From the NCBI RefSeq assembly GCF_021869535.1, contig NW_026262701.1:31558001-31622000 (forward strand): a DNA stretch of 64,000 nt. Direction: 5' to 3'. Positions 586-64,000 of this stretch are shown one piece after another. This stretch comes from Mytilus californianus. Its lineage: Eukaryota. The notes under the pieces are model-generated. The model saw only the letters and a program-made list of their open reading frames with translations. It was not told the DNA's origin and searched no databases. Position numbers and translations under genes: made by a program. Position 1 is the stretch's first letter. Every line of letters starts with the position of its first letter.

Positions 586-717
586 ATGCCAATTAGAGTA
601 TATGTACCAATAGTTTCTCATGACAAAACTCTTGTTCCGGTATTGAAATATAATATAAACGGAAAGAAATGGCGAACAGGGCAGAGATTACCAGAAGTAC
701 AACTTGATGACGTTTAT
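586..717 (+). CDS. Copy 1 exon E (ZU5-1, MPIRVYVPIVSHD...KW)
   Basis: tatag| acceptor and |gtaag donor; 132 nt, same length as homologues at 29220-29351 and 55190-55321. Confidence 0.85.
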
Positions 718-3700
718 GTAAGTTAATCCATATTTCTCGGAATAGCGGGTGGTCTAGAATGCTATTTGTATATTGCAAAAGGTATATATGGAAAAAAGAA
801 TTATGGCATCAATATATAGAAGAGGCTGTCAATGTGTAACAGAACTGATGATCAAACCATCTGGAAATCTGTTAATCTCCTCCTGCTGTAATTTTTAGTT
901 GGTAAGATAAATATCAAATTCATCTTTTAATTCGAGCACAACACAGATATATGCATATCTCATTAGCAGGCTTATGACCAGAAAAGTAAATTTAACACTT
1001 GTCGCTTAACTTAAAACATCCCTTTAACCTATCATTCAAGCATTATAAATACTAATCAGCCAGCGAATGATTCCCAACAATGAATGAAAATTGACGTTTC
1101 AAGTAGAAAATATATACGGTTAAAAGAATAACAATTTCTCTTCAGGGTATCTCATTTGTTGGCGTAGAAATTCCGTTGACACAACTGAAACAACTGCAGT
1201 GTGTAGCAGTAGCTAGACATCCAAGAGATGAAACGGAGGTAGATGAAGGTGGTAAAGAGTTTGAACCAGAGGGTGATAGAAACATTAAACTAAAATTTCC
1301 TCCTGCAGCATTTCCTGGAATAACAACCGTTGCAACAGTGGTATTTTAAAGTTATCTTCAGATATATAAAAACAATCAGGCAAAAATGGCAGTTTTAATA
1401 CATTTAGGGATAACCTCTTTCTTTCTTGTTAGCAAGGCTATTTTTATTTCTAAATTCTGATATAATGTCTGCAAAATTTTCTATTTTATTCTATCGTTTG
1501 AACAATGTAAATATGCGCGCATAGGACGGACGTATCTTGTCTTTCTGGTCTTTTTTTTATCTCGCTCTTGAAAATGTCATTTTATCTTCAACTTATATTT
1601 TTTTGCATATTTGTTCCTTACATTCTAATAAATGATTACAGACTGTGCCTTGGACTCAAAATGACATCATAAATGCGTCGAAAAGACACAGAGAGTTGGA
1701 AAATATGAAAATAGCAGGTTCTTATATCAACATCTCGTGTGAAAATTCAACAAATGCAGATTCTGACCTTGAGATTTACAACCTTGGATGGGAAGGTAAG
1801 TCTTTAATTAATCCATTTAACACCAACAGTTAGAATTCAAATCATAGATTTCTTTTAAAAATTAACCACGAATGAGTGTCTGTTTAAATGAAATTGCTAT
1901 TCCATACTCTTTTTTTTTCAATAATTCTTATTGATTATTCGACAATAATCGACAGAGAATTAGTCTGTATGACGGGTCTATGTTGACGACGTTTTTGTAG
2001 ACATCTATCGCAAATAGACACTATTAAGTTTCACTGTGCTTTTATAGAGAGTTATCAAAAGTTTCATCAAGTGGATACACACCACTTTCGATTTAAGTAT
2101 TTTTTATTCGACACCGACGGTATTTATGATCACTTGTTCCAGAATCAAGCTTCATGTTAGCATGTTTTATCGTGTGATGAGAACTTGTTCACAGTTAAAC
2201 ATGTTTTCAAAATGTGCCTTCCTTGAATGAATTTACAGTGAATAAAAGTATTGGTAAAAGACATACCTTGAACCGCGAGACCCTGAGCAGATGTAGCAGG
2301 TGGATAGTTAACAACATGAATCCTGATGACATGGCTCTGCACTTAGATGATATGTTTGAGAGCGATTTTGCTGAAGAGCTAATGGTAGGCTGGTTTTGTT
2401 TCTTTTAAACAATTGTAGCAAAATGTTTTTAAATTGCGTAATCTTGATAATTTGAATAAATAAAGGCAACAGTAATATACCGCTGTTCAATAAATCGATA
2501 AAGCGAAAACAAATCCGGGTTACAAATTAAAACCGAGGGAAACACATTAACTATAAGAGGTAAACAACGGAACAACAGAAACACTGAACTGCAACAACAA
2601 CAAACGCCAACATACATAGAAACGCACTATTTGAAAACAACTGTAATATAACATTATCGTATTAAGATTAAGACGTTTCGATTTGGAAAAAAATATTTTA
2701 AATACCGGGTTTCAGTTTTTCGGTTAATTCTTTGTCAGTTTTATGCTCTCTGACATGTAGTAATTTCGGCTCTCTAAATCAATTGAAATTAGTTCTATCA
2801 AAACTTTTGATTTTTCAACCCTGTATATCACCATTCCCCATGTGAAATTAAAATATCGTCTAAAAGAAATAATCCACAATGCTTTTCAACATATAATGGT
2901 AGCATACGCTATACATTTATTACCTTGGGATACCATACGGCATATTTTGTTAATAGCAAACAAAAAGGTAAAACATGCTACACAGAGGAACAATTTTCCC
3001 CACCTTATTAGTAGCAATATACCAACTTCACCTGCATATGGGATATACATTTCTAACTCATTCGGTATTCAAGAGCTTGCAGCTGCTACTCAGACTTTAT
3101 AACACGTCACCAGTGTCTGAGCAAAAAGTTGATGAACCAGGGTAATGTCAAAGAACGTCTCGTCCTTTTTCAAAAAAAGTTCATCTGAAGATACCAAGAC
3201 CTTGTTGATAAATATTCTGTATTAACTTCACAAATAATACACGTTGGTCTTGAAGTAAAGATTATAGGTACTAACGTTGTTTATCATCTTAATTATGTGT
3301 TATAGTGTTCTTTTATTTGTCTTTGTAAATTATTACATTTACTGTTTAGTCTATTTTTGGTAATATCCATTTGATGTAGCTCGGTACTTATACGTCCCGT
3401 CATTGTGTTATTGTGCTATGATAAATTTTTGTCTTTCGTTTTCGTTTATATGCCTTTTTGTTTTTTTGTTTTTTGACATATTTGTTTGTTTTTATAGTGA
3501 TTAAGATTATAACACAATGTTAGCTGCTGTACCCCTATTTTTTACATTTTTACCTATTATGTCTGTTTGTTTTGTTCACACATTGTTGTCAATATAATGG
3601 AATTTTATACGACTGTCATACAAGTGAGAGGTTTAGCTAGCTATAAAACCAGGTTTAATCCACAGTTTTCTACATCAGAAAATGTCTGTACCAAGTCAAG

Positions 3701-6700
3701 AATATGACTATTGGTTTCCATTCGTTTGATGTCTTTGAGCTTTTGATTTTGCCATTTGATTAGGGACTTTCCGTTTTGAATTTTCCTCAGAGTTCGGTAT
3801 TTTTGTTATTTTACCTTTGACCTTAAGTCTGGTCATTCAATAGTATTTTAGAATCATGTGTCGTATAGACGGAAATTGGTATCATAATTGTTTACCACGA
3901 TTAACGATAGCAAGATTTTCTAATAGAAAAATTCATTATTATTCCTCTTAGAACCGATTTTGTACAATTTGTGTAAATACAGTTGCGTCTTGAAAGTTTG
4001 TTTTTATCTTCTATTGATTTAAGATTGTTACCTTTACAGACAAAAAATACACAAGGAGATAAGAATAGACACATTTTATATGAATTAATGGAATCAGATG
4101 ATGCCAGTATTGACACTTTCGTCGAAAATTTAAGTTCTTCACAACCAAATGTAGCAGACAAAATCATTGCTGTGAAGTCAAAAGTACAAAGTTCCAGAAA
4201 ATCCAAAGATTCAAAATACGATTTCAATTTTGCAAGTGACTTTGATCCAGGTAAACTAGCAGTTTTGACTGAGTATTTATTTTAACTAGTAGCGGGAAAT
4301 GGGAATATATCTAAAAAAAACTTTCAAATTGGACGATAATATCGAAAACGAATTTGAAATCGAACAGTACAATACGTACCAATTTAGTTAACAACAAATG
4401 CACCTAAGAAAAGCATGCAAATATAACACAAGACATATTGCCAAGAAGCTCGGATTTATAGCGTTAAAAGACACTCTGACCTAGTCGAGTGCAATTGGTT
4501 CATTCTTTTTAGTTGGTTTATTTTTGTAACGTCATGTTTAAATCAAAATGAATCTATGCTTAGTAAGCAGGTTTCTTTCCTAGGTTTACGTCAATTCAAC
4601 CTGAACAATTTATATTTTAACAAGTAGCGATTTCTTGATGAAAGGCTATTTTAATAAAAACAAATACACGGAAACGAAGAATTGACCCTGGGAAGAAATA
4701 AGTTTTACTATTAACTTTGAATAATTTCTAAACAGATTTCGAAAAGAAAGAGGGAATAGTTTATATGGTTTCCAAAGTCAGTGGCAAATCATGGGAAATA
4801 GCACCAATAGAAGAAACTGATGCTCATCCAAAAGCAAGATTCCTAAAACTTCCTGCTGGGAACAACAATTTTCAGTAAGTTGACACTTAATTAGAAACCT
4901 AATTCTAGACAATCACATTAGATAATAAATTTGGAACTTTCAATCCATATATACATTATCGATGATTTTATATTTATGTTTTATTTAGATTTATATTTTG
5001 CATACATCGCAACCCTGAAAAGCTGGGAAAAAGATGTTAACCACTTTGTACACACCAGATCTTTGATATGTATAACTTTGGCACAATCGAGTTTGGAAAT
5101 CTATTTTGTAGATTTTACATTTACAGATATTCGTATTTCTTTTTTCATTTGAAATGTATTATACTTTTAAAATTATTGAGGTGCTTATTAGTTTCAATAT
5201 TTAATAATTCAATACATGTATTTTCATCAATAAAATATTTTGCATTTATAGGGTACTGGGTCTGGTTGTTCCATTTGAGATGAAAGATGAAGTTATCTGT
5301 AAAACAGCTGAAATTCTAGAAAGTTTGAATTGTGTCACTAAGGTGTCACTGATATGTCGTCAAAAGCACGCAGATCCTCATGATGCTGTTATTCAGTGTG
5401 TCCGGACAGAAAATATAGCTGGTACTCTTCATCATTTGGATGCTTTAGGATATACAGATGGTCCACCGGAAAGCTCAGAGTTTGGGGTTGTTGATGGAGA
5501 AGAAATTGAAGTACAATACGAATCTAATTTGTATTTCGAGTATTATCAATATTCTACCTTGAAGATGAAATTTTACAGCAATCTTTCTGTCGAAAGATAT
5601 TCAGGAAATCTCCTAGTCCTTAACAAAGGCGACCAAGCCGAAGACGATAAATATCACGGACATTTTTCCTACAGTGTACTCCCTGGTCGGTTGTCCATTC
5701 CAAGGCAAGGAACATTTGTCTTATATGTGCCAAAGGTATGCATATCAGAAAATGTGAAACAAAATTCAGACAATATAAAACATAAACGAAACATACTTAT
5801 GTATATATATTCATGATTGAATATAAAACAACATGAACAATGTAAACAAAGTAAATGCACCGTACTATTTATAGTGTACCGTTCAGCGATCCTGCGAGAA
5901 TCACCAAGCTGACGTTATTCCTGTAATATACATTGTCGAACGTAATTTCTTCCAATGCATTGATTAATAGTTCATTAGTGATATTAAAACGGTAAAAGAA
6001 ACTCGACAATACATTCAGGGTAGGAAAATATTGTTCTAGTTCATTCTGAAATAGATGTTAACATGAGCGAATTGTTAAAACAACATAATGTATTTACAGC
6101 ACGTACATTTTTTTCTGACATTTTCTCAATATGTAACCATAAAGGACCAAAAGTATAGCCACATCTGCACAATAAATCGGAGCTATGCATGAAGGAGATA
6201 TATTCGTTAATTTCAAATAATTTCAACTGTAAATAACATACCAAAACACTAGAAGAGATGTATGATTAAACGAGAAAGACATGTAATAAATATAAAAAGA
6301 AGATGTGGTTTGATTGCCAATGAGACAACTCTCAACAATAGACCAAATGACACAGAAATTAACAACTATAGGTCACTGTACGGCCTTCAAAAATGAGCAA
6401 AGCCAATGCCGCATCGTCAGCTATAAAGGGCCTCGAAATGACAAATGTTTAACAATTCAATAAAGCATGTCTGTGCCATTTTATTCTTTAAAATACATTT
6501 TATTATCTTTTAACACATTTCCAGAAAGTTGGTAAAAGTTGGTAGATGTATTTAAGACAATGTGAATATGTACTCACTCTCTCTGTAAAGTATTTGATAG
6601 ATATGTAGAATATTTTGGATCATTTTTCACACAGGTATTGCGTTCATGCTTAGTTGGTATACTGTTCATGTATATATTATGTATGTTACAATACAGTAGT

Positions 6701-9694
6701 GTTTGTTTGTATCTGTACTATTTTTTTTTTAATTTAATCCAATTATAATCATTTTGTATGTTTTATAAAAAGATATCATAACCCAAAAGTGCATTTACTA
6801 TAAAGTAATTATTTTCAGCCTTTAGAAGAAAACGTCACCAACTTTCCTTATACATTGGGTGTGCCAGGTATGCTTGTCCCATATAACACAAAAAACTGTG
6901 ATAAAAAAGTGGAATACAATATCAAATCAACTCTAAAGGATAGATTTTGTATGCTACAAATAAATGGAAGTTTAATTACTGTGACTTTTATTACTTTTCT
7001 CTCTCTCTGACACCATAGATGCACAATATAATCAACAAGGGGGGCACAATACAAAGTTCCCGAAGGTCAGCAGATACTTATTTTTTTTTTAATTTCTCTG
7101 ATTGAGGAACAAAGGAAGTAAAGAAGACAGTTAGGAAAGATATACAGCCAATAGTTCAATATTGTGTTAGTTCAGTGTTCCCAGATTAGAAGCTTTTACA
7201 CGCAATGCTAAACAAAAGTAAAATTTTGTTATTAGTTTCAAAATATTGTTTCCATTATTTAAGTTTTCCACTAAAATATGACTTTCATGAATAGTACTTT
7301 ACACTGTGAAATGGCTTCCACTGGGTTCATGAACTGTATTATTTTTTTTTCCAAGAAAATAGTTCAATATAAAATTGAGAATGGAAATGGGGAATGTGTC
7401 AAAGAGACAACAACCCGACCACAGAACAGACAACAGCAGAAGGCCACCAATAGGTCTCCAATGCAGCGAGAAATTCCCGATGTTAATTTTCTAAACGTAC
7501 ATGTACATCCATCAGTTTTGTTTCCTTTTTTTATACGGATACATTTACATTTTATCTTTGAAGAATATTACATGTTTTTGGCTACGTCGGTGCCGTCTTA
7601 ATACAGAACACACGAACAGCAATAATCAGCGTGACACAGTTTTCTTTGTAAATACAAATTTTAAGTAATTTATAACGATTTCTTAAAATATTTCAGTCAA
7701 GGCATTGGCAAAGTTTATTGCTTGGCAAATTACTTGTACCAATTCTAATTCAACAAAATGGGTATGTCTTGGCAAAAATCTAACAGATGGGGACACACAG
7801 CTATATCATCAAATATTGGAAAATGTGAAAGAGCAACGGGATAATGCAGAAGAACGTGAACGTTGTGAATTGTACATTTTGTATTGGTCCAACCACCATG
7901 CACCAGATGTTACTGACAAGGTATAACGGAAACAAAAATACTTACTAAGAAACTAGTACCTCAGAAATGAAAGTGCAGAATGTTATTATATAATAAAGTG
8001 TATATGAAATGGATTTTTCAATATCAGGAGAGAGCTGTTTGATTTGTATGGGGGAGATATTAATGTGTCATTTGATATAATCTACATATTTACTGGCAAT
8101 ATCAACATGATCAACATTTGTTTTCTTTATGTGCTAGGTCAAATCTTAATTCATTTGGTTATTTGCTGTTCTTAACATTTTTGTTGATTGTATTTGATAT
8201 GTATTGCAAAAACCCGAGGGTTCCTGCTCTATCAACGACGTCCATCGAGTTGCTAATTCTAAAACCAAATAAGTGACACTCTGTCATTAGGAGTCTTAAT
8301 AAAGACTTTCTGTAATTTCGAAATGGTTTGAATGATGAGATGCAAGGAATGGTAAACGCCAATAAAAGTATACATGTATAATTAAATTCAAAAATTGCAA
8401 GCTTACTTAAGTACGACACGTCAGTTAAGGTGTCCTCCAAACTGGTTAGGATTATATTTTGATTATTCCTCAAATGCAACGTGTTGCTTACGTATGTTAT
8501 TTGTTTTTATTATAAAGATAGCGAAGATAATAGCTGCTCATCGTCATACACAGTTAGAAGCAGAAGCAAAGCAATTCATAAAACCTTTCATTCCAGGCAG
8601 AGGTAAAAACTAAATTGAAATAGTATTTATTTGAGTATCTTTAATTTAAATGAGTGTGCAGTTTGATCATGATTTTATAATGAAGTATGGGGACAATAGG
8701 TTTTTGTGGCAAATGAAGGCCCTGAATGGGCATTCTATAATTACCACTGAGCAAGCAACAACCAGTCAACATTAAGACACAACTTAAATCGTTTCAAAGA
8801 TTAATATCTAATTATTAACGTAACGCTCTGTTTAACGTCTTCCGTTTAACTTATATTTAGGCAACAGCAATTTATCGACGTTAAAAAAAGGGTTAAGAAG
8901 AGAAACCAAGGTAACAAGCAAAAATTGAAGGTGTCGCATGAACTCCAACAGGAGCGATACCGAATGCAGCAACAGGGTAAGCATCTCCTGTTATGCATGC
9001 ATCACCCGCTGGGCGAATCCACAATCAGTCGAAATGTTACAATAGAGAATAGGACACATTTTACGATTACATATATATATATATATATATTTGACGACTT
9101 TTCTGGTTTCTAAATTCGATATTGGTAAATGTGTTCTCTACAAGAAAATATATTATTAAAAGTCATTAGAAGCGCTTAGTTGGGTAAACTTGACATGGTT
9201 GAACAAAATAATACTCCCTTGCAGTCATTTAAACCAAAATAAACTATAACATGTATAACCATGAAATGTATATGTTGTTGGATTTAATTAACAATAAAAG
9301 TGTCTTTTAAATTAGTTAACAATGTTGTGAAGAACATTATGTGGGATAAAAATAATTCTTATTTTACATCAAATCATTGTAAAAATATGCTACTGCACGT
9401 TATATATATTTTTTAGGAATTTTATCAAATGATAACCTGGAAAAGATGGCTTATGTTTTAGCAAAGGATTGGGAAGTTTTTGCAAAGAAACTAGGGTTTT
9501 CGAGTGATGATATTAACAAAATAAAATCGAACCAACCTGGTGAAGTAAGACGTACACTAAGAGTGCTAGATCTCTGGCGGCTGTCAGATGGCGCTATTCA
9601 AAAGGGAACAGAGTTGGTAAAGAGTTTGCACCAAGCTGCAAGGGCAGCTCAATGTGGTGCAAAGTTACTAAGCATGATTTCTGAAGATCTATAA
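586..9694 (+). CDS. Copy 1: PIDD1/DTHD1-like ZU5-ZU5(CARD insert)-UPA-DD-DD gene, 5'-partial, 11 exons, about 698 aa in window
   Basis: Exons 586-717, 1146-1340, 1642-1795, 2239-2384, 4040-4250, 4736-4874, 5252-5735, 6819-6867, 7697-7920, 8518-8602, 9417-9694. All junctions are GT-AG, phases join into one open frame (2097 nt) ending in TAA, and homologous exons recur twice downstream. Confidence 0.9.
1146..1340 (+). CDS. Copy 1 exon F (end of ZU5-1, start of ZU5-2: GGKEFEPEGDRNIKLKFPPAAF)
   Basis: ZU5 N-terminal motif GG..(x)..v.l.FPP.AF; 195 nt, same as 58808-59002. Confidence 0.9.
1642..1795 (+). CDS. Copy 1 exon G (ZU5-2 core)
   Basis: TVPWTQNDIINASKRH...YNLGWE; ttacag| and |gtaag; 154 nt, same as 59922-60075. 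Confidence 0.9.
2239..2384 (+). CDS. Copy 1 exon H (CARD, first half)
   Basis: ETLSRCSRWIVNNMNPDDMALHLDDMFESDFAEELM matches the CARD helix 1-3 pattern; 146 nt, same as 60290-60435. Confidence 0.85.
2993..3815 (+). mobile_element. 5'-truncated Penelope-like retroelement (Naiad/Chlamys-type RT C-terminus plus tail) in the CARD intron
   Basis: With frameshifts reads PHL.SNIPTSPAYGIYISQLIR..RAC..YSDF..RHQCLSKKLMNQG..KERL. Confidence 0.75.
4040..4250 (+). CDS. Copy 1 exon I (CARD, second half, plus linker)
   Basis: TKNTQGDKNRHILYELMESDDASIDTFVENLSSSQPNVADKI matches the CARD helix 4-6 pattern (T..dk.r.lL..l......f..F...L...qp.lad.l). Confidence 0.85.
4736..4874 (+). CDS. Copy 1 exon J (C-terminal strands of ZU5-2)
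   Basis: DFEKKEGIVYMVSKVSGKSWEIAP...ARFLKLP; aacag| and |gtaag; homologue at 63882-64000. Confidence 0.85.
5252..5735 (+). CDS. Copy 1 exon K (UPA domain)
   Basis: LDALGYTDGPPESSEFGVVDGEEIEV...KFYSNL...YHGHFSY resembles the PIDD1 UPA pattern (GPEPSDTVEMFEGE..FYS..RGQVSF, recalled from memory). Confidence 0.85.
6819..6867 (+). CDS. Copy 1 exon L (49-nt linker)
   Basis: ttttcag|CCT...CCAG|gtatg; the phase 0 to 1 change is needed to join K to M. Confidence 0.7.
7697..7920 (+). CDS. Copy 1 exon M (death domain 1, helices 1-5)
   Basis: ALAKFIAWQI...KWVCLGKNL...ERCELYILYW has the DD pattern l..ia..l...W..L...L ... l..W. Confidence 0.8.
8518..8602 (+). CDS. Copy 1 exon N (end of DD1 and linker)
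   Basis: IAKIIAAHRHTQLEAEAKQFIKPFIPGR; 85 nt, same as 40605-40689. Confidence 0.8.
9417..9694 (+). CDS. Copy 1 exon O (death domain 2, terminal exon)
   Basis: LEKMAYVLAKDWEVFAKKLGFSSDDINKIK...LRVLDLW is a canonical death domain; TAA stop at 9692-9694. Confidence 0.92.
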
Positions 9695-13307: not shown

Positions 13308-13428
13308 GTAAGATTCTTTATGGAAAATCATGTAATATATCAGAAATAAAGTTGGTCATCATACATAAGCGAATTCAAAGATTTGATTGGTGTTCTTGTA
13401 AAAATCAAAATATACCATCTAAGCATAA

Positions 13429-13850
13429 ATAAAGGCAACAGTAGTATACCGGTGTTTAATAGTCATTAATCTATTTAACTGAAACAAATCCTGGTTACAA
13501 ACAAAAACCGAGGGAAACGCATCAACTATAAGAGGAAAACAACGGAACAACAGAAACACTTAACTGCCACAAAAACAAACGCCAACATACATAGATAATA
13601 GACTATTTGATAACAACTGCCATATTCCTGACTTGGTACAGGACATTTTAAGAAAAATGGTGGGTTTAACCTGGTTTTATGGCTAGCAAAACCTCCTGCT
13701 TATATGGCAATATTAAAAATACCGCTAAAATGACAACACTACGTGACAGGAATACAGTACAAATAAACACAAGTACACTCAGGACAGAGAAATACATAAA
13801 TAAATAATATAATAGTACATTACAACATGTAAACCACAGAATAACAACGG
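13429..13850 (+). repeat. Abundant interspersed repeat (AAATAAAGGCAACAGTAGTATACCG family)
   Basis: Further copies at about 2459-2645, 18880-19148 and 63050-63310 (+), and 10170-10305, 21440-21550 and 25860-26270 (-). Confidence 0.85.
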
Positions 13851-27615: not shown

Positions 27616-28469
27616 TAAAATGTGTACCTGTAATATCATTTCATCCAATAGGGGCGACATTGATATTAAAAAAGTAGAACAAGTTCAGACAATGCAAAGA
27701 CTTGCAAAACAACAACAAGAACTGATGGAGTTCACAACAAAGACCACACAATTGGTTATGAAGATTGAAAGTAACGCAGCTCTGTTTCTATCTGATATAA
27801 CTGGGGTTAAAAGTCAAATGAAGCAATGATCTGATGGGTTAGAAACATTGGAAGAGAAAAACGAGAAATAAAAGAGACAGAAGAAAGGAAGAAAAGGGAA
27901 AAAGAATTAGCAGAGCAAACAAAAAGGAAACAGGAAGAACGGAAGGAAAGAGAACATGAAGAAGCAGAACGGCAAAAAAAAAAGAAAAGAAGAACGGATG
28001 AAAAATGAACAGAAAGAAGCAAAACAAACAAGCAGAACGGAAAAAAACAGGAAGAAGCAGAACGGAAGAAAAAAAGAACAGTAAGAAGTGATTCGGAAGA
28101 AAAAAGAACAAGAAGAATGGAAGAAAAAAAGAACAGGAAGATACAGAACGGAAGAAAAAAGAAAAGGAAGATACAGAACGGAAGAAAAAAGAACAAGAAA
28201 AAGCAGAACGGAAGAAAAAAAGAACAGGAAGAAGCAGAACGGAAGAAAAAAGAACAGGATGAAGCGGTAAGGAAAAAAAAAGAACAGGAAGAACGGAAGA
28301 AAAACGAACAGGAAGAACGGAAAAAAAGAACTTGAAGAACGAAAGAAAGAAGAAAATGAAGAAGCTGAAAAGCGAAAAAAAGAACAAGAGGGACGAGAAG
28401 CCGGGAAAAATCGCCGAAAACAAGAGGAAGAAAAGAAAATGAGGGATTGAAAAACTGGCTTCCCAATAT
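27616..28469 (+). pseudogene. Copy 2 exon C with expanded E/K/R minisatellite
   Basis: DIDIKKVEQVQTMQRLAKQQQELME aligns with 51629-52048; premature TGA at 27827-27829; frameshifts in A-runs; conserved AT|gt donor at 28470. Confidence 0.85.
27930..28400 (+). repeat. Purine-rich coding minisatellite (30-bp and 24-bp units, EQEEAERKKK)
   Basis: Repeated GAACAGGAAGAAGCAGAACGGAAGAAAAAA variants. Confidence 0.85.
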
Positions 28470-31400
28470 GTAAGTTCGCCTTATTTGCTTTCTCTTTCTG
28501 AAATATTTATGGTCATATAGCAGTTCATTTAAAATGTTCATTTAAACAGTTTCTAATATATAGCAATTCCTAATTCATTACATACAATATCATCAATTTG
28601 TATGAAGATAAAGATATATGACAACGAAAAAGCTTCTAATTGACAATAAAACATCGAATGACATAAACATATTGTTTTCAGATGTATACAAATTTATACA
28701 CAATATGTCAAGCTGTAAATATCACCGATTCTAGAAAATTCACTACGAAAACTATATATAATTGGTGATATACACATTTCGTCCATTTATTAAGATATCA
28801 CAATTAAAGACGAAACAAAGTCTGCCAGGAAATCTGCTGTGTTATTTTTACAATGCCTGATGGAACTCAGAACAGCGATTTTGCCAAAGCTATGACTCTG
28901 TTGAAGACCTCGATAAATGTTTGAAAACCTATGACGAAACGAAAACTTATATCCCCTGTTATCACAATCCAGCCACAGAAGAGCAAAGAGACTATGTTAT
29001 GCAATTAACATTGTGCAATTAAGATGTAACAATTCCGATTTTTGGTTGTTAGTCTTAACAAACATTTTTAATATTGACTGCATCGCAAAGATTTATATTG
29101 ATTAATTCCAATAGGTAAAATTATGATCAGTATTTCAATGCGTAAATTATAACATATTAATTACATATATAATGTTATAAATTTATGTACTGACAAATAA
29201 CATTTTGTTTACATTTTAGTTGCCAATGCGAGTGTATGTTCCAATAGTATCGCATTATGGTAACCTTTTACCAACACTGAAGTTCTCAATCAAAGGTCAG
29301 AAATGGAGATCAGGAAAATCACTTCCAGAAATTACACTGCCAAATGTACAGGTTAGTAAAATAAAGATTACTTGAAGTAGTTATAATAGTACATTAAAAA
29401 TAAATCCGCGCTTTGTTTATCATTTCAAATAACTTTTCGTTTATTAATTACCAGAATGTTTCTTTGTTTAATGTTGTTTTTGAAACTATGGTCATACATG
29501 TTATATTCAAGTGTAATTATGCGAAGAAATTGTAGTTAATTGATATAGGTAACCTTAAGGTATCTTACATTGTCACTGTAACATATTCTCTTGTTAGCTT
29601 CCAGCAATTGAACTGCAAAGATACTCACCATGGTCGATTTAAAGAACGATGTCAATCGAGATTTCGATCTCAGGATTGATTTAATCATTGACTTAATCTA
29701 GTCATGCATCTTCAATAAGAATAAGAAAAGTTAAAGAATACACGTAAAGATTTTTGACTCGACATCATTTTTACGTGTCAGGGAAGCTGATATTTTTCTA
29801 TTATATAACTGTTCCATCAAAGAAAGGAAAATGATAATAATAAGTAGTTGTTCTCAGTTTAAGGAAATCTTTACAACAGAACGTAATTGTTTAAAGTAAG
29901 ATCAATTAAACAGCAACAACACACAAAAAAACAAACATTTAGACATGAGCAAAATGTCTTCAACAAAAGAAAAATATCCTTAAGATTTGTCAAGATTTAA
30001 ATGAACTCGATACTAAACAACTATGAACAGATTTTACAGACACTAATAAAGATCTGCCCTAAACATTCATTTTTGTTAACGACAAAAGTATTAAGATCTC
30101 AAACTTCCCACTAACAGGAACATAATTGTTCACCTATATGTATTTGTTTTATTTTTTGCTACCCTTTTCTATTTATATTGGTCAGTGGATTAAGAAAATA
30201 TACACCTGTATTGTCAAATTGAACTAAATTAGCATGCAAGGTTAAGAATTAATGGTTTTATCTAATTACAGAAGATTTTCTTAAACCGTTACGTTGATCA
30301 ATAGAAATTATCTTACATAGAATATGAAAAAAGAATTTTTTTTTACCACATAGCGTAGTCATATCAATTACAAAAATTCTGAAATAACAAAAAAAAATTG
30401 GCCAATGACTATTTCATGTGATAAACTAAATATATTTTTGAAAATATTCCTTTCATATTGAGCTGCAATCGAAATGATAAAGTAACTCTTCATAATAAAA
30501 GAAACTAATAAAATATTTGCAAAGTGAACGTACTGATATTGTTCTAAATAGTAATTATGCGCTTTCTCTGTATTTTTTGCTCATTGAATTATCTCCACAG
30601 TAATTTTTATTTCGACTTTGAGAATGAACGGACTAGTCGGTTCCTCTGTTAAATTTTTTTTTAGTAATTTCTTTTAATATGAATATTTTGATATTAAGTT
30701 CAAAGGTTCATCAATGGTTAGGCTGTGAAAAGCAATTCTAACAAATCATTTTCTTACGTGCATTGTAATCTAATAAGTTAACCGACATTTTTACCAAAAT
30801 TTGGTACAGAGATATCATTTTGTGTAACTTATCAACCGTGTATGTGTTATCGCTGCAAATAATACTTTCCTAAACGACACTTCGTGAATGTCAGTTTACG
30901 CGACTTACCAAAAAGCAGATTTAGACACGTCAGGTGCATTATATCCCGTTACTCCCCTAGCAGCTGGTGACTAGTTATCATAGTATAAAACATTAAATAA
31001 TTTGTGTTCATTCCAGTTCAATAATACCCACTTCGTTAGCACTATTTGTGTTTGCGTTATCTCTCACTTTCAAAATCGCACATAATTTTTTTTTTTTTTT
31101 GGGGAAAAAGCTAAAGTGTATTATAATTGTGATACATATTTCTTCATGAAAAAAAAATTGTAGTTTTGATTGGAAGTAAATTGTACGGGTTATTGTTATG
31201 ATTATTTAGTATTATATTAATGTATGCAAATCAAATATATATATTTAAAGAAACTTGTGCTGGATGAAAATACATTTTTTTTCGATTTTTCAAGTCTCCA
31301 ATTTCATCACAGGAACTGGAGAATCAAACATTTGACGCCTCGTTAAACGGCAACTGAATTCACCGATAAACATATCAATTCCATAAATACATTTTAGATA

Positions 31401-31620
31401 ATTAGAAACGTTACTTAGATGACTGTTTTGTATTGTGGACATTAATTTGGAGAAATTAAATGAATTTAGAAATGTAATCAATAATATCAACAAAAGTATC
31501 CATTTCACTTTGGAATATAGCGATAGACAGATACACAATTACCGTTTAATGATACATACATATAATGATGGTATCCGTATTTTGCGTTTTATAACATTGT
31601 TGTTATAATTCTAAAACTAG

Positions 31621-31795
31621 GATGTTTGCTTTGTTGGAGTGGAAATGCCCATTAAGCAATTGGAGAACATGCAGTGTGTTGCTGTTGCAAGACATAAACG
31701 TCATGAAACTACAGTTGACGAGAGAGGAAAAGTTTTTGAACTAAAGATTGACAGCAATATGAAAGTCAAGTCGAAAAACTATTGTTGCAACAAAG
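31621..31795 (+). pseudogene. Copy 2 exon F with 20-nt deletion removing FPxxAFxG
   Basis: 175 nt versus 195 nt in copies 1 and 3. Confidence 0.85.
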
Positions 31796-36280: not shown

Positions 36281-37859
36281 TTTTAACTTCTACTAACAAA
36301 ATGAATCCGATGATGCCATACAAGATTGATCTCAGTAACACAGATGCTTATAGCAGTATGATGGCATGTTTTATACAAAAGGGTAAGGTTGTCGGGAAAG
36401 CAAATTTAAGGTGTGGAAAGAATAATTTTTATTACTTTTTATGTGCATTTTATAAATTTTTTAAATTTGTTTGGACATTCAGATACAGTTCAACTAGTTT
36501 AAAATAAATACAAAATTAAATGAAAATCCGAAATTCTGACCGGCCCCTCTGCTTTAAAATGTAAAAACTATTGACAATATTATTATTTCGAACAAAATAA
36601 ATTTCACTGAAGTACAAGGAGTTTGCAGGATTCTTAATTTCATCTGTACATATTTTAGTAAAGGAGGGAGATTTTATAGGTGTAAAAACTCATAAAAGAT
36701 ACCAGGCTTATAATTTGGTACGCTAGACAGCGTTTCGTCTACACAAGGTTTATCCATGGCACTCGAATCAAAACAGTTAAAAGGCTTAATCAAAAGCAAA
36801 ATTAAATAGCATTGAAAACAAACAATTTCGAAAACTTATACAAAACGATTAAAGCTGTCTAATCCTTGTGGTAGGAATACATCAGTGTTTACAATAGTTC
36901 AACATTTAATAAACTGTAAGTTTAAAGGAAATAAGTATTTCAATGATGTTTCATGTAATAAACAAAACATGACGATGCTCTCAAGAACGAAGAGTTAAAC
37001 AGCAGATCCGTCGACCCAGTTGTTGTAAAAACTCCCCAAGGCTAGGCTAATAACTTGGTACGCCTGATGCGAGTTTCATCAAACAGAGGACTCATCAACG
37101 GGGTTCAAATTAAAATAATTGGAAGGTCAAATCAAGTCGATGCTAAAGTAAAACGAAAACCGAAAATTCCCAATAGTTGTGTCAACAACAGTTTAGGCTG
37201 TCTATGTCATGAGATAGAAAAACCTCATTGTTTCCAGTAATTTAACATTTCTCATATTAGTAACACAAACGAGCTGACTATTGGCTGGTGACATCGACCC
37301 AGTTGTTGTAAGAACTCATCAATGATACCAAAAGAGACGACAATATAAAAAATACTAGGAAATTGTAATTTACAGAAACGGCACTTTTATAGTACATCAT
37401 GAACTATTTTTCGTTGAGGTTTTTAACTGTGCAATGTACTAACAATTTGAGGGAAAATAATAATACGTTTCTTTTTATAACTCTCTTGTATATCAGCAGC
37501 TTCGTTATGTTTTAGGAAGATTTTCATATAAAAATTTGATAATTCATTTTCTAAGAACTACTTTATTACGCAAAACAACATTTTTGTTATAAGATCCATT
37601 TTTATTTTTGTATAATGCTTTGCATTGTATTTAATCAAACAATAATTGCTTAATCAAGTTAAATTTGTGTTGCTGAAAGCAGTTCCATGGACTCATGCCG
37701 ACATAAAAAATGCACCAAAGAAGCACAAGGAGTTGCAAAATATTAAAACAGCCTGTTCCTATAAATATTATAGATATATCATGCGAACATTCAACAAAGG
37801 CAGATTCAGATTCAGAGATGTATGATTTTGGGTGGGTTGGTAAGTTTTTTATGAATATA

Positions 37860-38053
37860 NNNNNNNNNNNNNNNNNNNNNNNNNNNNNNNNNNNNNNNNN
37901 NNNNNNNNNNNNNNNNNNNNNNNNNNNNNNNNNNNNNNNNNNNNNNNNNNNNNNNNNNNNNNNNNNNNNNNNNNNNNNNNNNNNNNNNNNNNNNNNNNNN
38001 NNNNNNNNNNNNNNNNNNNNNNNNNNNNNNNNNNNNNNNNNNNNNNNNNNNNN
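37860..38053. other. Assembly gap (194 N)
   Basis: Run of N; true size unknown. Confidence 1.
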
Positions 38054-40874
38054 ACTTAATCAAGTTATTTTTTTGTTGTTGAAGGCAGAAGGGGACAAGA
38101 ATTGTATGATCCTACGTCATTTGCATGATTCTGATTCAGATGGTGATTTCGATAAATTGTTAAACGGGTTGAAATCTGCCCAACCGAATGTGGCAAACAG
38201 AATTACTTCGGTTAAAAATCAACTCAAGTTGTCTAGAAAACAGAAAACACGGACGCCGAGGATAACTTTGCTAGTGACTTTGATCCAGATATGAAGATAT
38301 ATCAGTAGCAAAATCAGGAAGTTAATTAAATAAGCTCATGGTCAAGTTTTGTTCTATTATTCTACATACAAAATAGCATATTGTATATACAAAGTATTAA
38401 GCTTAAGCTTTTATGTTCACAAGAGGGATTGCAATCTATGTTTTAAAAATTAATTTGAAATTTAAGTCCCATATTGAATCTTGTGCACTGTATTACAAAA
38501 AGAAATTATTAAAAAAGTGTGCATCTTTTAAGACCGTATCAGGTATCCGGCTGAAGAACTAGCCCGTTCAGATTCATTTACAAACAGTGTGATTGCTATG
38601 TTATATTCAACATTTTGGTACTTATTGCTCATAAAAACACACTTCAGCAGTATTAAAATTTCTTTGTTATCTAAACTGATTGAATTATAGGAGAGGTTAG
38701 TACATTCAAACAAAAATGATTAGTTAACACTAAATCGTTGTGAAACGCATAAATATCTCAATTTCTTTAATTACTTTACCCCCACACAAATACGATACGT
38801 ATACACTGAGGATAGTGTTTTAAACCGTACATGAGACCATCTGTCCTTCAACAATTCCTTGTTCTCGCAATGAGAGTGTCTTAAGTTTTGTGAAATCCCC
38901 TTCAAAATTGAATGACGATTATCACTCATTTAAACGGACTGGCATGGCAATACAGATATTGTTTGACTCATATTTGCTGTTCTAAATTCGGAAATCATTT
39001 TGAATTCAGGAAAATATATTATCAGCCTCATGCACAACTATGATTCTTTGTTCGGATTAAGTTTTACTGTATGTCCTTTTTTGTTTAATTAGCTCTTCAA
39101 CGTGTGCATATGTTTTCTTTTTCGATTATTATAGCCTCCAGCCTCACTGCATAATTATTTATTGTCAAAATGCGCATATGATGCAGTAAAATTGTTACCG
39201 ATAACCAATGAACCTGTAATTAATGGCCATATTTTGCAAGGTAGCCTATACAGATATCCCCTATTTTTGTCGCCAAGATTGTATCTCCAAATTTCTTGTA
39301 CTAGCTTCAAATTTGTATGAAAGTTGCCTCTTGTCAAACTCTTGGATGTGTTCGACTCTAGGTTCATAAAAAGGGAACCATTGTTTAATAAAATAGTATA
39401 ACAACTACCGAACTCCAAAGTAATTTAAAAAAAGGGGGAAGTCCATAAAAATGGACAAAATCAAAAGTTAACAATCAACGGAACAACTTAAACACAACTG
39501 TTATATTTCTGACATGGAAAACGGGGGATTTGGGAAAATATTTGATTTCAATTATTGTCGCAAAAATATCATCCTCATAATTTAGCAAACCCCTTCAATA
39601 TTGCATATTGGTATACATATCCATTTAAGCTCTTATCGCCATATGGCTTGGCATCTTTAATTTTTAATCAGATCCTCGACAAATGTGTATGAAGGATTTC
39701 ATTGATTAAAAAAGTTCATATTACTTGTTATCCATAAAGCCAAGATTAGATTCCTTTCAATTTTGGTTGAAGATTTCTTCTCATCATATCATTGGATGAT
39801 TTGTAAAAACAGAATAAATTTGAAATGGAATTTCTCTTAGTATTTCATTTACAGAAGAACAAGAACCTAACTAGCAGTTCACTCACAAACTTATAGTTCA
39901 TTTCATTTCATTTCAGATCAGATCAATGACATATGAAAAATCTCATTAACTTATGTATATGGATATATATATAAAAGGAATATACCACACAGTCCAGTTC
40001 AAAAGAAGCGAAAAGAGGGAAATATTATGAATTAACAGTAGACAGAAATTGCTTAGTCTATTTTTTGGGGGCAGGGATGCCCACACAATCACTGAAAAAA
40101 TATATAAATACCAGTTGTAAATCTTCATATTCTGTACAAGAATGTTTGTAAGTTTGGTTGAGTTATGTCAATCTGTTTTCAAGGAGTTGCGAATTAAACG
40201 AGAGTGACACGAAGACGCAATTTTTTTTTAATATTTCGGATTTAAGTGTAGGGAGAGACGAAATATCATATTGTAAGAGATACGATGGAGCATGTTTTGC
40301 TAATGATATTCTTTAGAGATGAAGCTAACGCGATCTTTCTATTCACTGATATACAAAACGTCAGGTTATATTCCTGTGAAGTAATAAAGTATTTATGTCT
40401 TGACGTCACAATTCTAAAATCAGAGAAAAGCAGGAAAATTGGACTTCATTATCAAATTTTGACCAGTTGAATATAAATCAAGTGATTAACACATTAATTA
40501 GAAAAATATAGTCATGACTCAAAGATGCATTTAGATGATAGAGATTGCCTCTGAAGGTGAATGTTGTGTATGCTACAATTATTCAGTATGTATGATATTT
40601 TTAGGTTGAAAAGATAATAACGTCTCATCATGATGCAAAATTGGAATTAGAAGCGCATCAGTTCATCAAACCATACCTGCCTGGAAAAGGTATAAGTATA
40701 ACTTGATGAACATGGCCGTTATGTAATATCATCGTGTTATGCAATAAACTTTACTACTTTGTATTTTTTAATAGGGATCTAATCTGTGTTGGTAATTAAT
40801 TACACTAATCATTCTGTCGTATACATGTTTAAATATCCGCCATCAAATACCAAAGAAAAGCCTATAACGTTCTA

Positions 40875-41869: not shown

Positions 41870-42150
41870 GAATATTTTCCAACGATACCTTAGAGAGAAT
41901 GTCATTTGCAATAGCTGGTGAGTGGGAATCTATGGCGAAGAGACTTGGTTTTACCAATGATGAAATAAATCAAATCAAAGATAGTCAACCGGGAGCAGTC
42001 AGACAGACACTAAAAATGTTAGATTTATGGCGACTGTCAGATAGCGCGATAGCCTCAGGAACAGATCTTGTGAAAACTTTCCATGAAACAGCAAAATCAG
42101 CGCAGTGTGGAGCAAAATTGCTAACCTGTATCTCTAAACATGCAAACTGA
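41870..42150 (+). pseudogene. Copy 2 exon O (death domain 2)
   Basis: Open frame homologous to 9417-9694, but preceded by ...GTTG instead of ...AG. Confidence 0.88.
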
Positions 42151-48138: not shown

Positions 48139-48409
48139 ATGGTTGACATCGAGGCATTACACTTATTACGTCAGCGAAAAGCGGCGCTAACAAAATTACC
48201 AAACCCAGCCAACCCAAACATATCATTTGAGAAATATGAAAAAGCCGTATCCAGAACGATGACGAGGACACATACAGAAATTGAAAAAGTATCAAAATAT
48301 GCCAAAGAGATCTTAGAAGAACTCGAGAATGTCAGAGAAGTGGTTAAAAACTGCAGCGTCAAAATTGGTGAACAATTGCAAGTGTTTATGAAAAGGAACA
48401 TGTTAAAAA
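48139..48409 (+). CDS. Copy 3 exon A (start ATG; predicted helical/coiled-coil segment)
   Basis: MVDIEALHLLRQRK...EIEKVSKYAKEILEELENVREVVKN; |gtacgt donor, phase 1 fits exon B. No homologue in the window to confirm it. Confidence 0.65.
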
Positions 48410-51628: not shown

Positions 51629-52048
51629 AAGTGCTCCACTTGTACCAAATAAGAACGATATTGACATGAAGCAACTAGAGCAAGTTCAGAAAATGCAGAG
51701 ACTTGCAAAACAACAACAAGAACTGATGGAGCTCATAGCGAAAACGGAACAACTTGTTTTGAAGATTGGAAGTAAAGCAGCGTTATCTCAATCCGATATA
51801 ACCGGTGTTACAAGTCAATTAATACAATGGTGTGATGGCTTAGAAACATTGGAAGAAAAGAAAAGAAGACTACAAGAGGAAAAGGAAGAGGAAGAAAGAA
51901 AGACAATGGAAAAAGAAGATGCAGAACGGAAGATAAAAGAAGAGGAAGAACGAAAAAAAGAGAAAGAAGAGCGAGAAGCTGAGGAGAAACGAAGAAAACT
52001 AGACGAAGAAAAGAAAAAGAGAGATTGGAAAACCTGGCCACCTTTCAT
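51629..52048 (+). CDS. Copy 3 exon C (helical segment plus E/K/R-rich tract)
   Basis: Open ORF 51603-52052; homologous to 27616-28469. Confidence 0.85.
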
Positions 52049-52415
52049 GTAATTTTGTCTAATGTGTTTTCTCTTTCTGAAATATTGATATATATACATT
52101 AATGGCTGTTCCTTTGAATACTATCAAATATGCAGTAATTCCGAATATGTTATTTATAATATTACCCGTTGATGAATAAACAGAGATGTGGGATACGTCA
52201 ATGAAAAGGCTGTTCCATCTCACAAAACCCAGATGTCAGTAACATATGGCTTGCAACATTTAACAACTGTATATAACATTTCAAGGTGTAAATAGTCCCG
52301 ATTCAAGAAAAATTGTGAATTACGTAAACACATGCTATCAAAGATTTATGACAGCATGTGTTTATTCTTTGTCTCTGCTACATTTAATGATTAACTCTTT
52401 CGTCCTTTTATCTAG

Positions 52416-52626
52416 TTATTACAATCCAAGACAAAACAAGTTCAGTCAGGATATCTGCTGTGTCATTTATACAATGCCTGATGGAACTCAAGATAGTGAT
52501 TTTAGCTGCCAAGGCTCTGATGCTGGTGAAGATCTAGATAAATGTTTGGAAACCAATGACGAACAAGTTATATTCTCTGTTATCAGAATCAAACCGCAGA
52601 AGGTCAAAAAGACGTTTGAGGTTTAT
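52416..52626 (+). CDS. Copy 3 exon D (ZU5-1 N-terminal part)
   Basis: QDICCVIYTMPDG...VIFSVIRIKP (copy 2 reads LISPVITIQP, a typical ZU5 motif). The donor could be at 52620 or 52626. Confidence 0.75.
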
Positions 52627-55189: not shown

Positions 55190-55321
55190 TTACCTATGCG
55201 AGTGTATGTACCAATAGTATCACATGATGAGAGCCTTCAACCAACACTGAAGTTCTCAATTAAAGGTTCGAAATGGAAAACTGGAAACCCACTTCCAGAC
55301 ATACAACTGCCACAAATGCAA
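55190..55321 (+). CDS. Copy 3 exon E (ZU5-1)
   Basis: LPMRVYVPIVSHD...KW; 132 nt. Confidence 0.85.
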
Positions 55322-58807: not shown

Positions 58808-59002
58808 GATGTTTCCTTCGTTGGAGTAGAAATACCCATTAATGAATTAGAGAACATCCAGTGTGTTGCTGTTGCTCGACATAAACTTCATGAAACTGAA
58901 GTCGACGAAGAAGGAAAAGTTGTTGAACCAGTCGTTGACAGAAATATCAAAGTCAAGTTTCCACAGAGAGCGTTTGCAGGAAAAACTATTGTTGCTACAA
59001 AG
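58808..59002 (+). CDS. Copy 3 exon F
   Basis: DVSFVGVEIP...NIKVKFPQRAF; 195 nt, open. Confidence 0.88.
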
Positions 59003-59921: not shown

Positions 59922-60075
59922 GCAGTACCATGGACTTATAAGGATATCAAAAATGCATCAAAGAAACACAAAGAGCTGCAAAATATTAAAACAGCCGACT
60001 CTTATATAGACATATCGTGTGAAAATTTCACAAAGGAAGATCCAGATTTAGAAATGTTCGACTTTGGATGGGTTG
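59922..60075 (+). CDS. Copy 3 exon G
   Basis: AVPWTYKDIKNASKKH...FDFGWV; 154 nt, open. Confidence 0.88.
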
Positions 60076-60289: not shown

Positions 60290-60435
60290 TTGATAAAAAA
60301 ATACAAACGAATCATTCTGTTAACCAAGAGACTCTTAAAAGATGTAGCAGATGGGTTGTGAATCATTTAAACCCTGATGAAACTGTTTTACCATTAGATG
60401 ATGTCTTTGATAGTGATTTTGTGGAAGACCTAAAG
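60290..60435 (+). CDS. Copy 3 exon H (CARD, first half)
   Basis: ETLKRCSRWVVNHLNPDETVLPLDDVFDSDF; 146 nt. Confidence 0.88.
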
Positions 60436-61102: not shown

Positions 61103-61316
61103 ACAAAAGAGACAGAGGGTGACAAGAATCGCTTGATTCTTCGTCATGTGCACGATTCTGATTCAGATAGTGATTTCGATAAATTTTTGGACGGATTAAA
61201 ATCTTCCCAACCAAATGTGGCAAATAGAATACATTCTGTTAAAAACCAAGTCATGCTGTCTAGAAAAACTGAAGACACGGACACTGAGGATAACATTGCC
61301 AGTGACTTTGATCCAG
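61103..61316 (+). CDS. Copy 3 exon I (CARD, second half)
   Basis: TEGDKNRLILRHV...FDKFLDGLKSSQPNVANRI; 214 nt. Confidence 0.88.
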
Positions 61317-61564
61317 GTACTAGGATTTTATAAACGTGTTCTCATTTATTAACAACTCAATGCAGAATAAAAAGTATTTAAATATACTTATAATATGATA
61401 TCAGTGTCATTGTTATTTGGAATACATATTTATTATTTTTGTTTCAAATTTAAACTCATTATTACTTACTGCAATAGTAAACAAACTTTGTTATTTAAAA
61501 GAGGCTGAAGAAAAAGCAAGATAATTTTCAAAACTTAAACATAAGTCGAAGAGATACTGAAAAA

Positions 61565-61900
61565 AGTAAAATCACAAAAATACTGAACTCCGAGGAAAAT
61601 TTAAAACGGAAAGTCCCTTATCAAATGGCAAAATCAAATAATAAAACACATCAAACGAATCGACAACAACTGTTATATTCCTGACTTGGTACAGGCATTT
61701 CCAAATGTAGAAAACGGTGAAACGAACCTGGTTTTATAGCGCTAAATCTCTCACTTGTATGACAGTCGCATCAAATTCCATTATATTTACAACGATGCGT
61801 GAACAAAACAGACATAATAGGTAACATTGTCAAAATATGGGTACAACATTCATAACTGTGTCACAATCTCAAAACAAACAAACTTTTAACAAAGAAGCAC
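61565..61900 (+). repeat. Abundant interspersed repeat (GTAAAATCACAAAAATACTGAACTCCGAGG family)
   Basis: Further copies at about 26899-27000 (+), and 3600-3815, 14990-15260 and 44770-44900 (-). Confidence 0.85.
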
Positions 61901-63045: not shown

Positions 63046-63881
63046 GGTGTAAATAAAGGCAACAGTAGTATACCGCTGTTCAAAAGTCATAAATCGATTG
63101 CGATAAAACAAATCCAGGTTAAACTTGGTTGTATGGCTAGCCAAACCTCCCGCTTGTATGGCAATGTTAAAAAATATCACTAAAATGACATTACTACGTG
63201 ACAGAAACACAGCACAAACACACGCAAAAACACTCATCACGGAGAAACGCACAAATAAATCATATAATAGTCGATACAACATGTAAACCGCAGAATAACA
63301 ACGAACATCTTCCATTCAGGACAGACAGCACAGGACATCACAAACAGTAAGGTATTTTTGTAACGAATATAAACACATATCAGAATGTGGGTATTTAGAA
63401 ACAAGACAACATCATTATATCTGAAAGTGAAATTAAAGAACGTTACAAGATTTTGGTCTTCGAAAAGGTTCTGTACGATCTATGCTTCTTGTCAGTACAA
63501 AAACAAGTCGGTCAGTAGTGGTGCACAGTAAGTAGCAATGGAAATGACGGCTGTCTGCGCTGAACTATCAATCCACCAAACCCAACAAACATGTACATGA
63601 TAATAAAAATAGATCCCGCGTTCTGATGATATCGTCTTCGGTAAATTTGTTATGGGAATCAGTGTTTTTCTTCACAGATTAAGATTTTTCATGACTTAAA
63701 ACAAGAAATTTTTAACAGGATTCCAACTTTTGTAAAAAAAAAACAGTCTATGAACTGACCCGATAAGCAATCTTTTAATTGGATATGGGGATAAGAAGTT
63801 ATAAGCGTAGAAAAATATAAATGATATTGATATTAAAAATGTATTCTATAATGATTATAATTGACAGAATTTTTTCAACAG

Positions 63882-64000
63882 ATTTTGAAAAGAAAGACGG
63901 TACTATTTGTGTAGTTTCAAAGGTGACAGGAAAGAGTAGGGAGGTTGTACCAATAGAGGCATCTGAAGAACATCCATAAGCAAGATTCCTGAAACTTCCG
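63882..64000 (+). pseudogene. Copy 3 exon J with in-frame TAA
   Basis: DFEKKDGTICVVSK...EEHP*ARFLKLP versus DAHPKARFLKLP in copy 1. Confidence 0.88.

Follow-up and report, generated by a model that had tools for sequence, protein, structure and literature searches.

Death-fold domains joined to a frame of ZU5 and UPA domains are known from the ankyrins (ZU5-ZU5-UPA-death domain (DD); structures 4D8O, 6M3Q and 3UD1), from UNC5b (ZU5-UPA-DD; 3G5B), from PIDD1 (LRR-ZU5-ZU5-UPA-DD), which is the core of the PIDDosome, and from the FIIND of NLRP1 and CARD8. In bivalves, tandem expansions of death-pathway and immune families have been described for IAPs in oysters (PMC8917759), caspases in Mytilus coruscus (PMC10967218) and innate immune families in C. 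gigas (PMC4346834). Here we analyse a 64,000-nucleotide (nt) stretch of a Mytilus californianus contig (positions 31558001-31622000; hereafter the window), which holds three same-strand paralogues of a predicted coiled-coil/ZU5-ZU5-UPA/CARD-like/death-domain family, and we follow these genes into an array of ten loci. Our literature search found no paper describing this family. The protein family itself, which has no described function, is a more interesting object than the pattern of the array that contains it.

An old array of ten same-strand loci

Self-comparison of the window (GC 32%, with a single N run) at the DNA and protein levels revealed three copies, seen as three colinear plus-strand series of matches with tblastn E values from 1e-10 to 1e-39. 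Exons were mapped with two guide proteins, P0001 from M. edulis and P0006 from M. coruscus, that had been retrieved with the largest exon as query. The window genes were searched singly by exon, the full-length roles were filled by public protein models rather than by spliced window models, and exon alignments were joined only locally, for substitution counts and trees. The exons are named, in order, exon 1, coiled-coil exon, E0, Ea, Eb, Ec, Ed, Ee, Ef, Eg, Eg2, Eh, Ei and Ej (Table 1). This mapping bore out what a first-pass annotation, made from the letters alone, had reported as a whole, namely three same-strand paralogues with a shared series of exons, and the exact exon map of copy 1 reproduced the sizes given there (132, 195, 154, 146 and 85 nt). 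The first half of the CARD is identical between copies 1 and 3 at exactly 28 of 49 positions, the figure that had been counted by hand.

Copy 1 is intact, as had been reported, with AG..GT borders at all exons, fitting phases and zero internal stops. It corresponds to the RefSeq gene LOC127700211 (P0062), and our exon model gives the same 698 residues; a further three exons at its 5′ end precede the window by 0.6-7.6 kb. The M. coruscus protein P0063 is its orthologue, and an orthologue is also found in a Logan contig from another sample, with introns about 76% identical. Judged by the intact frame, purifying selection, the orthologue and the automatic RefSeq model, copy 1 is most likely functional.

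Exon-by-exon search of the genome (1.65 Gb, 175 contigs), the search along the chromosome that had been proposed, located ten plus-strand loci, each with every exon scored, and one remote minus-strand copy. The ten loci span 740 kb (contig 30.97-31.71 Mb), and the array extends past both edges of the window, as had been suspected. Every exon checked is intact in loci A (public protein XP_052060881.1), D and F and in copy 1; loci C and J carry one stop each; and several lesions, all of which differ between loci, mark B, E and copies 2 and 3. A TGA once assigned to the large exon of locus J was discounted, as it lies in intron read-through and not in the exon. Lesions apart, exon sizes and phases are conserved among the array loci, with AG/GT throughout, and between copies only the exons align. 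The fourth copy that had been thought possible does not exist within the window: the extra fragment closest to it, 12.6 kb beyond its end (contig 31634598-31634828), is an orphan exon for the second half of the CARD, with one TAA and no family exons adjoining, and it is a relic of another lost copy between copy 3 and locus J. The dispersed copy, on the minus strand at contig 3167002-3178899, 28 Mb away, is broken; its large exon contains two TGA codons and its death-domain exon is 57% identical to that of copy 1.

A maximum-likelihood tree on the exon alignments of the ten array loci placed A outermost and copy 1 next, with the remaining eight loci in one clade (100/100 support). Copies 2 and 3 both belong to this younger clade, in agreement with the proposal that they split after copy 1. 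The features first offered for that split are real: the acceptor strings common to copies 2 and 3 stand at 31613/58800 and 29211/55181, and the extra codon in the DSDSD(G/S)DFDK motif is present in both copies. They mark no special tie between the two, however, because they are features of the whole younger clade, the codon being found in every one of its copies. Nor did a sister pairing of copies 2 and 3 emerge from the trees: the two fall in a polytomy in two trees, and copy 3 pairs with the M. galloprovincialis protein P0060 in a third.

Divergence among the loci covers a wide range. Nucleotide identity is 50-52% between A and all other loci, 64-67% between copy 1 and the younger clade and 79-90% within the younger clade, and synonymous divergence (dS) exceeds 2 when copy 1 is compared with the rest, ranges over 0.3-0.7 inside the younger clade and drops to 0.006 for C and F. 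When other species were sampled through their public protein models, the lineages of A, copy 1, B, D and copy 3 each paired with an orthologue in M. coruscus, M. edulis or M. galloprovincialis (support 1.0). Because these five lineages have cross-species orthologues, most of the duplications would predate the Mytilus radiation. Pairwise ratios of nonsynonymous to synonymous divergence (dN/dS), computed per domain as had been suggested, are 0.08-0.34 in the partitions from Ea to Ej, CARD included (to one decimal, 0.1-0.3 in every domain partition), which indicates purifying selection; no domain among these partitions has an excess of replacement changes, and the short N-terminal E0 reaches 0.67.

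Tandem paralogues, independently lesioned pseudogenes, cross-species clustering and purifying selection, the signs of a birth-and-death family in the model of Nei and Rooney, are all found here. The original reading as birth-and-death evolution is upheld by the mixed ages, the private lesions of each dead copy and the lack of homogenisation. Concerted evolution was rejected on the identities of 64-90% together with the cross-species orthologue groups, and an origin as retrocopies was rejected on the retained introns.

Taken together, we regard it as very probable that the locus is an old head-to-tail array of death-fold scaffold genes that grew by tandem duplication and then passed through birth and death. 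The array would have grown by repeated tandem duplication of DNA; from the retention of introns and the single orientation of all copies we infer unequal crossing-over. Some copies (copy 1 and loci A, D and F) would have been kept for a long time under purifying selection, and others would have died singly, each through its own set of nonsense mutations, frameshifts, lost splice sites or deletions (copies 2 and 3, B and E, with single stops in C and J). With most duplications placed before the Mytilus split, species would have come to retain different members. Such slow birth and death appears ordinary, being a pattern common in bivalve genomes. The array resembles the bivalve death-pathway expansions in being a tandem family that mixes retained and decayed members, and it differs from them in that its members are old, not recent, and in that purifying selection is dominant. 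To the known expansions of death-fold and immune genes it adds a resolved case, with exon maps of ten loci sorted into alive and dead.

Predicted architecture of the family protein

From its N terminus onwards, the family protein would comprise a coiled coil, then a ZU5-ZU5-UPA frame in which two exons encode a CARD-like insert, then a helical region and, at the C terminus, a death domain. On single exons, Pfam detected only the death domain and a weak match to CARD. Death (PF00531) matched window positions 9410-9685, in the last exon of copy 1, with an E value of 2.5e-9 and 37.6 bits against a cut-off of 22.6, and CARD (PF00619) stayed below the gathering score, with 12.5 bits (E 0.16) on copy 1 Ee alone; at the homologous position of a Pecten (scallop) homologue, CARD reached 22.5 bits, short of the cut-off of 23.9. 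When PDB sequences were compared with a profile of exon Ee, no CARD was retrieved, and ESM Atlas returned nothing for the CARD region. Pfam ZU5 gave no score on the mussel proteins; it was matched by one member among ten aligned relatives (E 0.019) and by the Lingula protein P0034 (E 1.5e-6).

The fold was assessed on an AlphaFold model of P0001, the family member from M. edulis (predicted local distance difference test score (pLDDT) 75.8), and the ZU5 and UPA β-domains in ZU5-ZU5-UPA order are seen on this model only. The best structural matches were the ankyrins and UNC5b. Foldseek matched the model to ankyrin-B ZU5-ZU5-UPA-DD (4D8O) with an E value of 7.6e-16 and to UNC5b with 2.4e-6, and VIA-align gave Z scores of 15.1 for residues 1-537 against ankyrin ZU5-ZU5-UPA and 13.7 for UNC5b. 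Residues 647-748 aligned with death domains at Z 11-12 by VIA-align, the best being that of ankyrin-G (Z 12.2, root-mean-square deviation 1.6 Å), and the ankyrin-2 DD was also matched by sequence profile (E 4.3e-6). Residues 218-316 scored Z 9.2 against the Apaf-1/caspase-9 CARD disk and Z 7.6-8.5 against the CARDs of Apaf-1, caspase-1, CARD9, NOD1, NLRC4 and NLRP1, with voltage-sensor helix bundles scoring alike; for a helical bundle, such values are suggestive of a CARD without being decisive. Unlike the ankyrins and UNC5b, the mussel family has neither ankyrin repeats nor a receptor ectodomain; its N terminus is a coiled coil rich in lysine and glutamate (K/E-rich), its frame is interrupted by a CARD-like bundle, and sequence identity is only 9-15%.

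With PIDD1 and with NLRP1/CARD8 the family shares the joining of a ZU5/UPA frame to death-fold domains. The PIDD DD (2OF5_H) aligned with the P0001 model at Z 11.2 and the NLRP1/CARD8 FIIND-UPA at Z 8.2-9.0, and the death domains of CRADD and PIDD were among the sequence matches. The differences are that the mussel CARD-like domain lies inside the frame and not at its end, and that the PIDD1 self-cleavage motif, the tripeptide HFS, is not conserved in the family; self-cleavage would be putative. HFS occurs at 5661-5669, in the UPA exon Eg of copy 1; P0063, the orthologue from M. coruscus, has it as well, and all other family lineages lack it. An identification as PIDD1 proper was discarded on this distribution and on the lack of an LRR match. 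By analogy with ankyrin-type modules and with PIDD1, with which they would share a common logic, the proteins of the intact copies would most likely serve as oligomerising platforms that bring in partners with CARDs or death domains for signalling in cell death or innate immunity.

Several observations weigh against parts of this account. The evidence on the fold comes from a paralogue-level relative, P0001, which is 58% identical in the largest exon, and not from the window's own protein. The CARD is below the Pfam threshold everywhere, and its structural Z scores of 8-9 are equalled by unrelated four-helix bundles. As to the duplications, unequal crossing-over is a deduction for which no flanking homology survives, and the divergence between C and F in the gene region (0.7-1.8%) is smaller than the 2.73% heterozygosity of the reference animal (PMC9710001). 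Finally, copy 2 may be more than one locus, as it is split by a scaffold gap whose right flank repeats the left-side acceptor and whose length is only estimated.

Copy 2 and the assembly gap

The heavy decay that had been ascribed to one copy is that of copy 2, which has frameshifts in five exons, lacks Ef, Eg, Eg2 and Eh and has lost splice sites. Exon search found none of these four exons within 38292-40604, and exon 1 of copy 2 was looked for and not found. Copy 2 is dead whatever the gap contains, and part of its apparent decay falls in sequence that the assembly gap makes unreadable. Within its coiled-coil exon, at 27936-28293, a 30-nt unit is repeated in tandem about 12 times (74% matches); the length of the K/E-rich stretch varies widely among copies and species, and the stretch is long in M. 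galloprovincialis P0047.

On the left of the gap, the Ns begin 20 nt into the intron that follows Ec, whose donor GTAAGT is at 37840. On the right, 31 nt that resemble the end of the intron before Ec (copy 2's own is at 37649-37679) run directly into Ee; compared with the Ec acceptor of copy 2 they give a local score of 21, the 99.9th percentile of random windows, and the motif cttaatcaagt...aag/GCAG is conserved across the younger copies. Between Ec and Ee, copies 1 and 3 have exon Ed plus 0.9-2.1 kb of intron. Because the right flank carries a repeated acceptor and a truncated Ee where copies 1 and 3 have Ed and this intron, the flanks of the gap are discontinuous, and the open reading frame (ORF) 37710-38294 that runs through the Ns is therefore an artefact. 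A direct join of Ec, which ends in phase 1, to Ee, which starts in phase 0, would be out of frame. Exon Ed of copy 2, the first half of the CARD, is either hidden in the gap or deleted. The junction at 38054-38084 looks like a microhomology deletion (GCAG), or like two haplotypes merged by the scaffolder.

These flanks raise the possibility, which we hold to be real but clearly the less likely one, that copy 2 consists of two things joined over the gap: these would be partial paralogues, or else haplotypes of a single locus, one of the haplotypes being without Ec and Ed through an in-frame exon loss of 300 nt. Such a join would fit the Ec acceptor motif on either side of the gap, a right flank that reads as acceptor, GCAG and Ee minus 9 nt in the manner of a microhomology junction, the 300 nt to which Ec and Ed sum and a gap length that is merely estimated. 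However, both sides of the gap rank the other loci alike, with F and E closest at about 84%, and the order and spacing of the exons suit the reading that we prefer, a single decayed locus.

Pace of turnover

The first-pass annotation had taken the array for a fast-turnover innate-immune or cell-death locus. A locus of this kind, engaged in an arms race, with rapid birth and loss, positive selection on the CARD or other domains and copy number varying among individuals, is in our view unlikely, although some features point towards it. The CARD is the most diverged partition, copy 1 having 59-63% nucleotide identity to the rest compared with 66-70% elsewhere. dN is highest in E0, with the CARD second; the intact locus D has a ratio of nonsynonymous to synonymous changes (N/S) of 2.1 in its 5′ half; and C and F are nearly identical, C having a stop. 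In addition, gene presence/absence variation is documented in M. galloprovincialis (Gerdol et al. 2020, PMC7653742; see also PMC10514466). The array is comparable in being a multicopy death-fold family of the sort that had been linked to such variation, and C/F could be a hemizygous or a duplicated segment.

Against fast turnover, dN/dS in the CARD is 0.11-0.34 and does not exceed that of other domains, the dS values of 0.3-0.7 and above 2 are those of old duplicates, and five lineages have orthologues in other Mytilus species; on these grounds the claim of fast turnover is not supported. The array instead appears old and conserved across Mytilus species, not rapidly churning. Lineage-specific N/S is about 0.6 for the intact locus F and 2.6-5 in the 5′ halves of the dead copies copy 2 (H2), B and E.

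Copy 3 and loci C and F

The single stop that had been reported for copy 3 is correct within the window (TAA in Ef), but beyond the edge follow a TGA and, in the large exon, a GT>AT loss of the donor, and the last two exons are absent: no trace of these death-domain exons was found within 17.5 kb, even with the closest orthologue as query. The nearly intact look of copy 3 is thus a product of the window edge. Its Ef also has Arg in place of a family-invariant Trp at 63938-63940. The orthologue in M. galloprovincialis, P0060, is a full-length model with a death domain. Copy 3-specific N/S is 1.8 upstream and 1.0 downstream of its stop, which points to a recent loss of constraint and suggests that the open upstream part has enjoyed no special protection.

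Loci C and F, 321.5 kb apart (contig 31118001-31148000 and 31440001-31470000), are 99.6% identical in exons. Over the 26 kb that hold the gene they are 98.2-99.3% identical with a few indels, and in the 4 kb upstream 90-93% identical; C has a stop in the 49-nt mini-exon at a position where F has Glu. Because divergence in the gene region is below the heterozygosity of the animal, C/F may be an uncollapsed haplotig and not a duplication; the pair is either a very recent segmental duplication or such a haplotig.

Some of the members counted as dead might nonetheless be useful, copy 3 as a decoy lacking the death domain, or C/F as a segregating presence/absence or null polymorphism. We think this rather improbable; if true, the array would allow the dosage of a PIDD-like platform to be tuned. 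Still less credence is due to the decoy by itself, in which copy 3 would be retained for a shortened product, with coiled coil, ZU5 and CARD but neither UPA nor death domain, that serves as decoy or regulator. An analogy is provided by CARD16, CARD17 and CARD18, the CARD-only genes beside human CASP1, which are likewise tandem duplicates cut by early stops just past the CARD; copy 3 differs in showing no sign of upstream constraint. The eight exons that precede its first stop, which amount to about 1.7 kb of coding sequence, are all open and have kept their splice sites, and all four lesions (4/4) fall in the downstream third (binomial estimate, p about 0.01-0.04). Yet the upstream part is not better conserved than the downstream part, the invariant Trp is lost shortly before the stop, the M. 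galloprovincialis orthologue is full length, and none of the public models returned is a copy-3 protein. Moreover, stops with several exon junctions downstream normally lead to nonsense-mediated decay, and that of copy 3, with at least three, would normally trigger it.

That the copies are assembly artefacts, uncollapsed haplotigs or mis-joins, is very improbable in spite of the scaffold gap with its repeated acceptor in copy 2 and the near-identity of C and F below the heterozygosity level, as copies 1-3 are only 64-82% identical in exons with unalignable introns, a divergence that excludes haplotigs for these three, differ in intron lengths and lesions, fall in different orthologue groups and lie in HiFi sequence that is contiguous except for the one gap.

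Table 1 Exons of the three copies and the assembly gap in the window (window positions)
Feature	Position	Strand	Remarks
Copy 1 Ea	586..717	+	132 nt, first ZU5-like part; AG/GT, phase 0-0, no stop; 100% match to P0062
Copy 1 Eb	1146..1340	+	195 nt; exon map and RefSeq model
Copy 1 Ec	1642..1795	+	154 nt, phase 1 end; exon map and RefSeq model
Copy 1 Ed	2239..2384	+	146 nt, CARD-like insert, first half
Copy 1 Ee	4040..4250	+	211 nt, CARD-like insert, second half; one codon shorter than in all younger copies
Copy 1 Ef	4736..4874	+	139 nt
Copy 1 Eg	5252..5735	+	484 nt, second ZU5 / UPA part
Copy 1 Eg2 (mini-exon)	6819..6867	+	49 nt, required for frame from Eg to Eh
Copy 1 Eh	7697..7920	+	224 nt, helical region ahead of death domain
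Copy 1 Ei	8518..8602	+	85 nt
Copy 1 Ej (last)	9417..9694	+	278 nt, death domain and TAA stop; Pfam Death PF00531
Copy 2 coiled-coil exon	27641..28700	+	K/E-rich, stops and frameshifts
Copy 2 E0	28795..29002	+	frameshifted, stops, donor lost
Copy 2 Ea	29220..29351	+	132 nt, open
Copy 2 Eb	31621..31795	+	175 nt compared with 195; 20-nt frameshifting deletion
Copy 2 Ec	37680..37839	+	160 nt; first base lost (1 nt), 7-nt insertion; donor GTAAGT kept
Assembly gap	37860..38053	.	N run; exon Ed and two introns expected here
Second Ec-type acceptor (cttaatcaagtt...aag)	38054..38084	+	abuts gap on right, fused to Ee
Copy 2 Ee	38085..38291	+	first 9 nt gone, 1-nt deletion, donor GT>AT
Copy 2 interval expected for Ef, Eg, Eg2, Eh	38292..40604	+	2.3 kb compared with 4.3 kb in copy 1
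Copy 2 Ei	40605..40689	+	85 nt, open, AG/GT
Copy 2 death-domain exon	41870..42150	+	open frame; acceptor AG to TG at 41868-41869
Copy 3 exon 1	48139..48393	+	open
Copy 3 coiled-coil exon	51633..52076	+	open
Copy 3 E0	52416..52620	+	exon scoring
Copy 3 Ea	55190..55321	+	132 nt
Copy 3 Eb	58808..59002	+	195 nt
Copy 3 Ec	59922..60075	+	154 nt
Copy 3 Ed	60290..60435	+	146 nt, first CARD half
Copy 3 Ee	61103..61316	+	214 nt, second CARD half
Copy 3 Ef	63882..64000 (continues to 64020)	+	139 nt; TAA at 63977-63979

Repeats and traces of mobile elements

The 18-kb spacer between copies 1 and 2 contains a 166-bp satellite at 11771-13186 (8.5 units, 91% matches) and a 192-bp repeat at 16061-16647 (3 units). 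An interspersed repeat of about 200 bp, with 80-91% identity and present in both orientations, occurs at 2456-2649, 10175-10309, 13425-13625, 18874-19072, 21451-21551 and 26074-26269, in an intron of copy 1 and in the spacer. Members of a second repeat family lie at 3501-3818, 14983-15264, 26898-27004, 44769-44906 and 61557-61872. Both interspersed families are probably like short interspersed nuclear elements (SINEs) or miniature inverted-repeat transposable elements (MITEs). Two minus-strand ORF fragments, at 57403-57786 in an intron of copy 3 and at 42860-43141 just past copy 2, have no Pfam match; they are 49% identical to each other over 51 amino acids and are probably relics of mobile elements.

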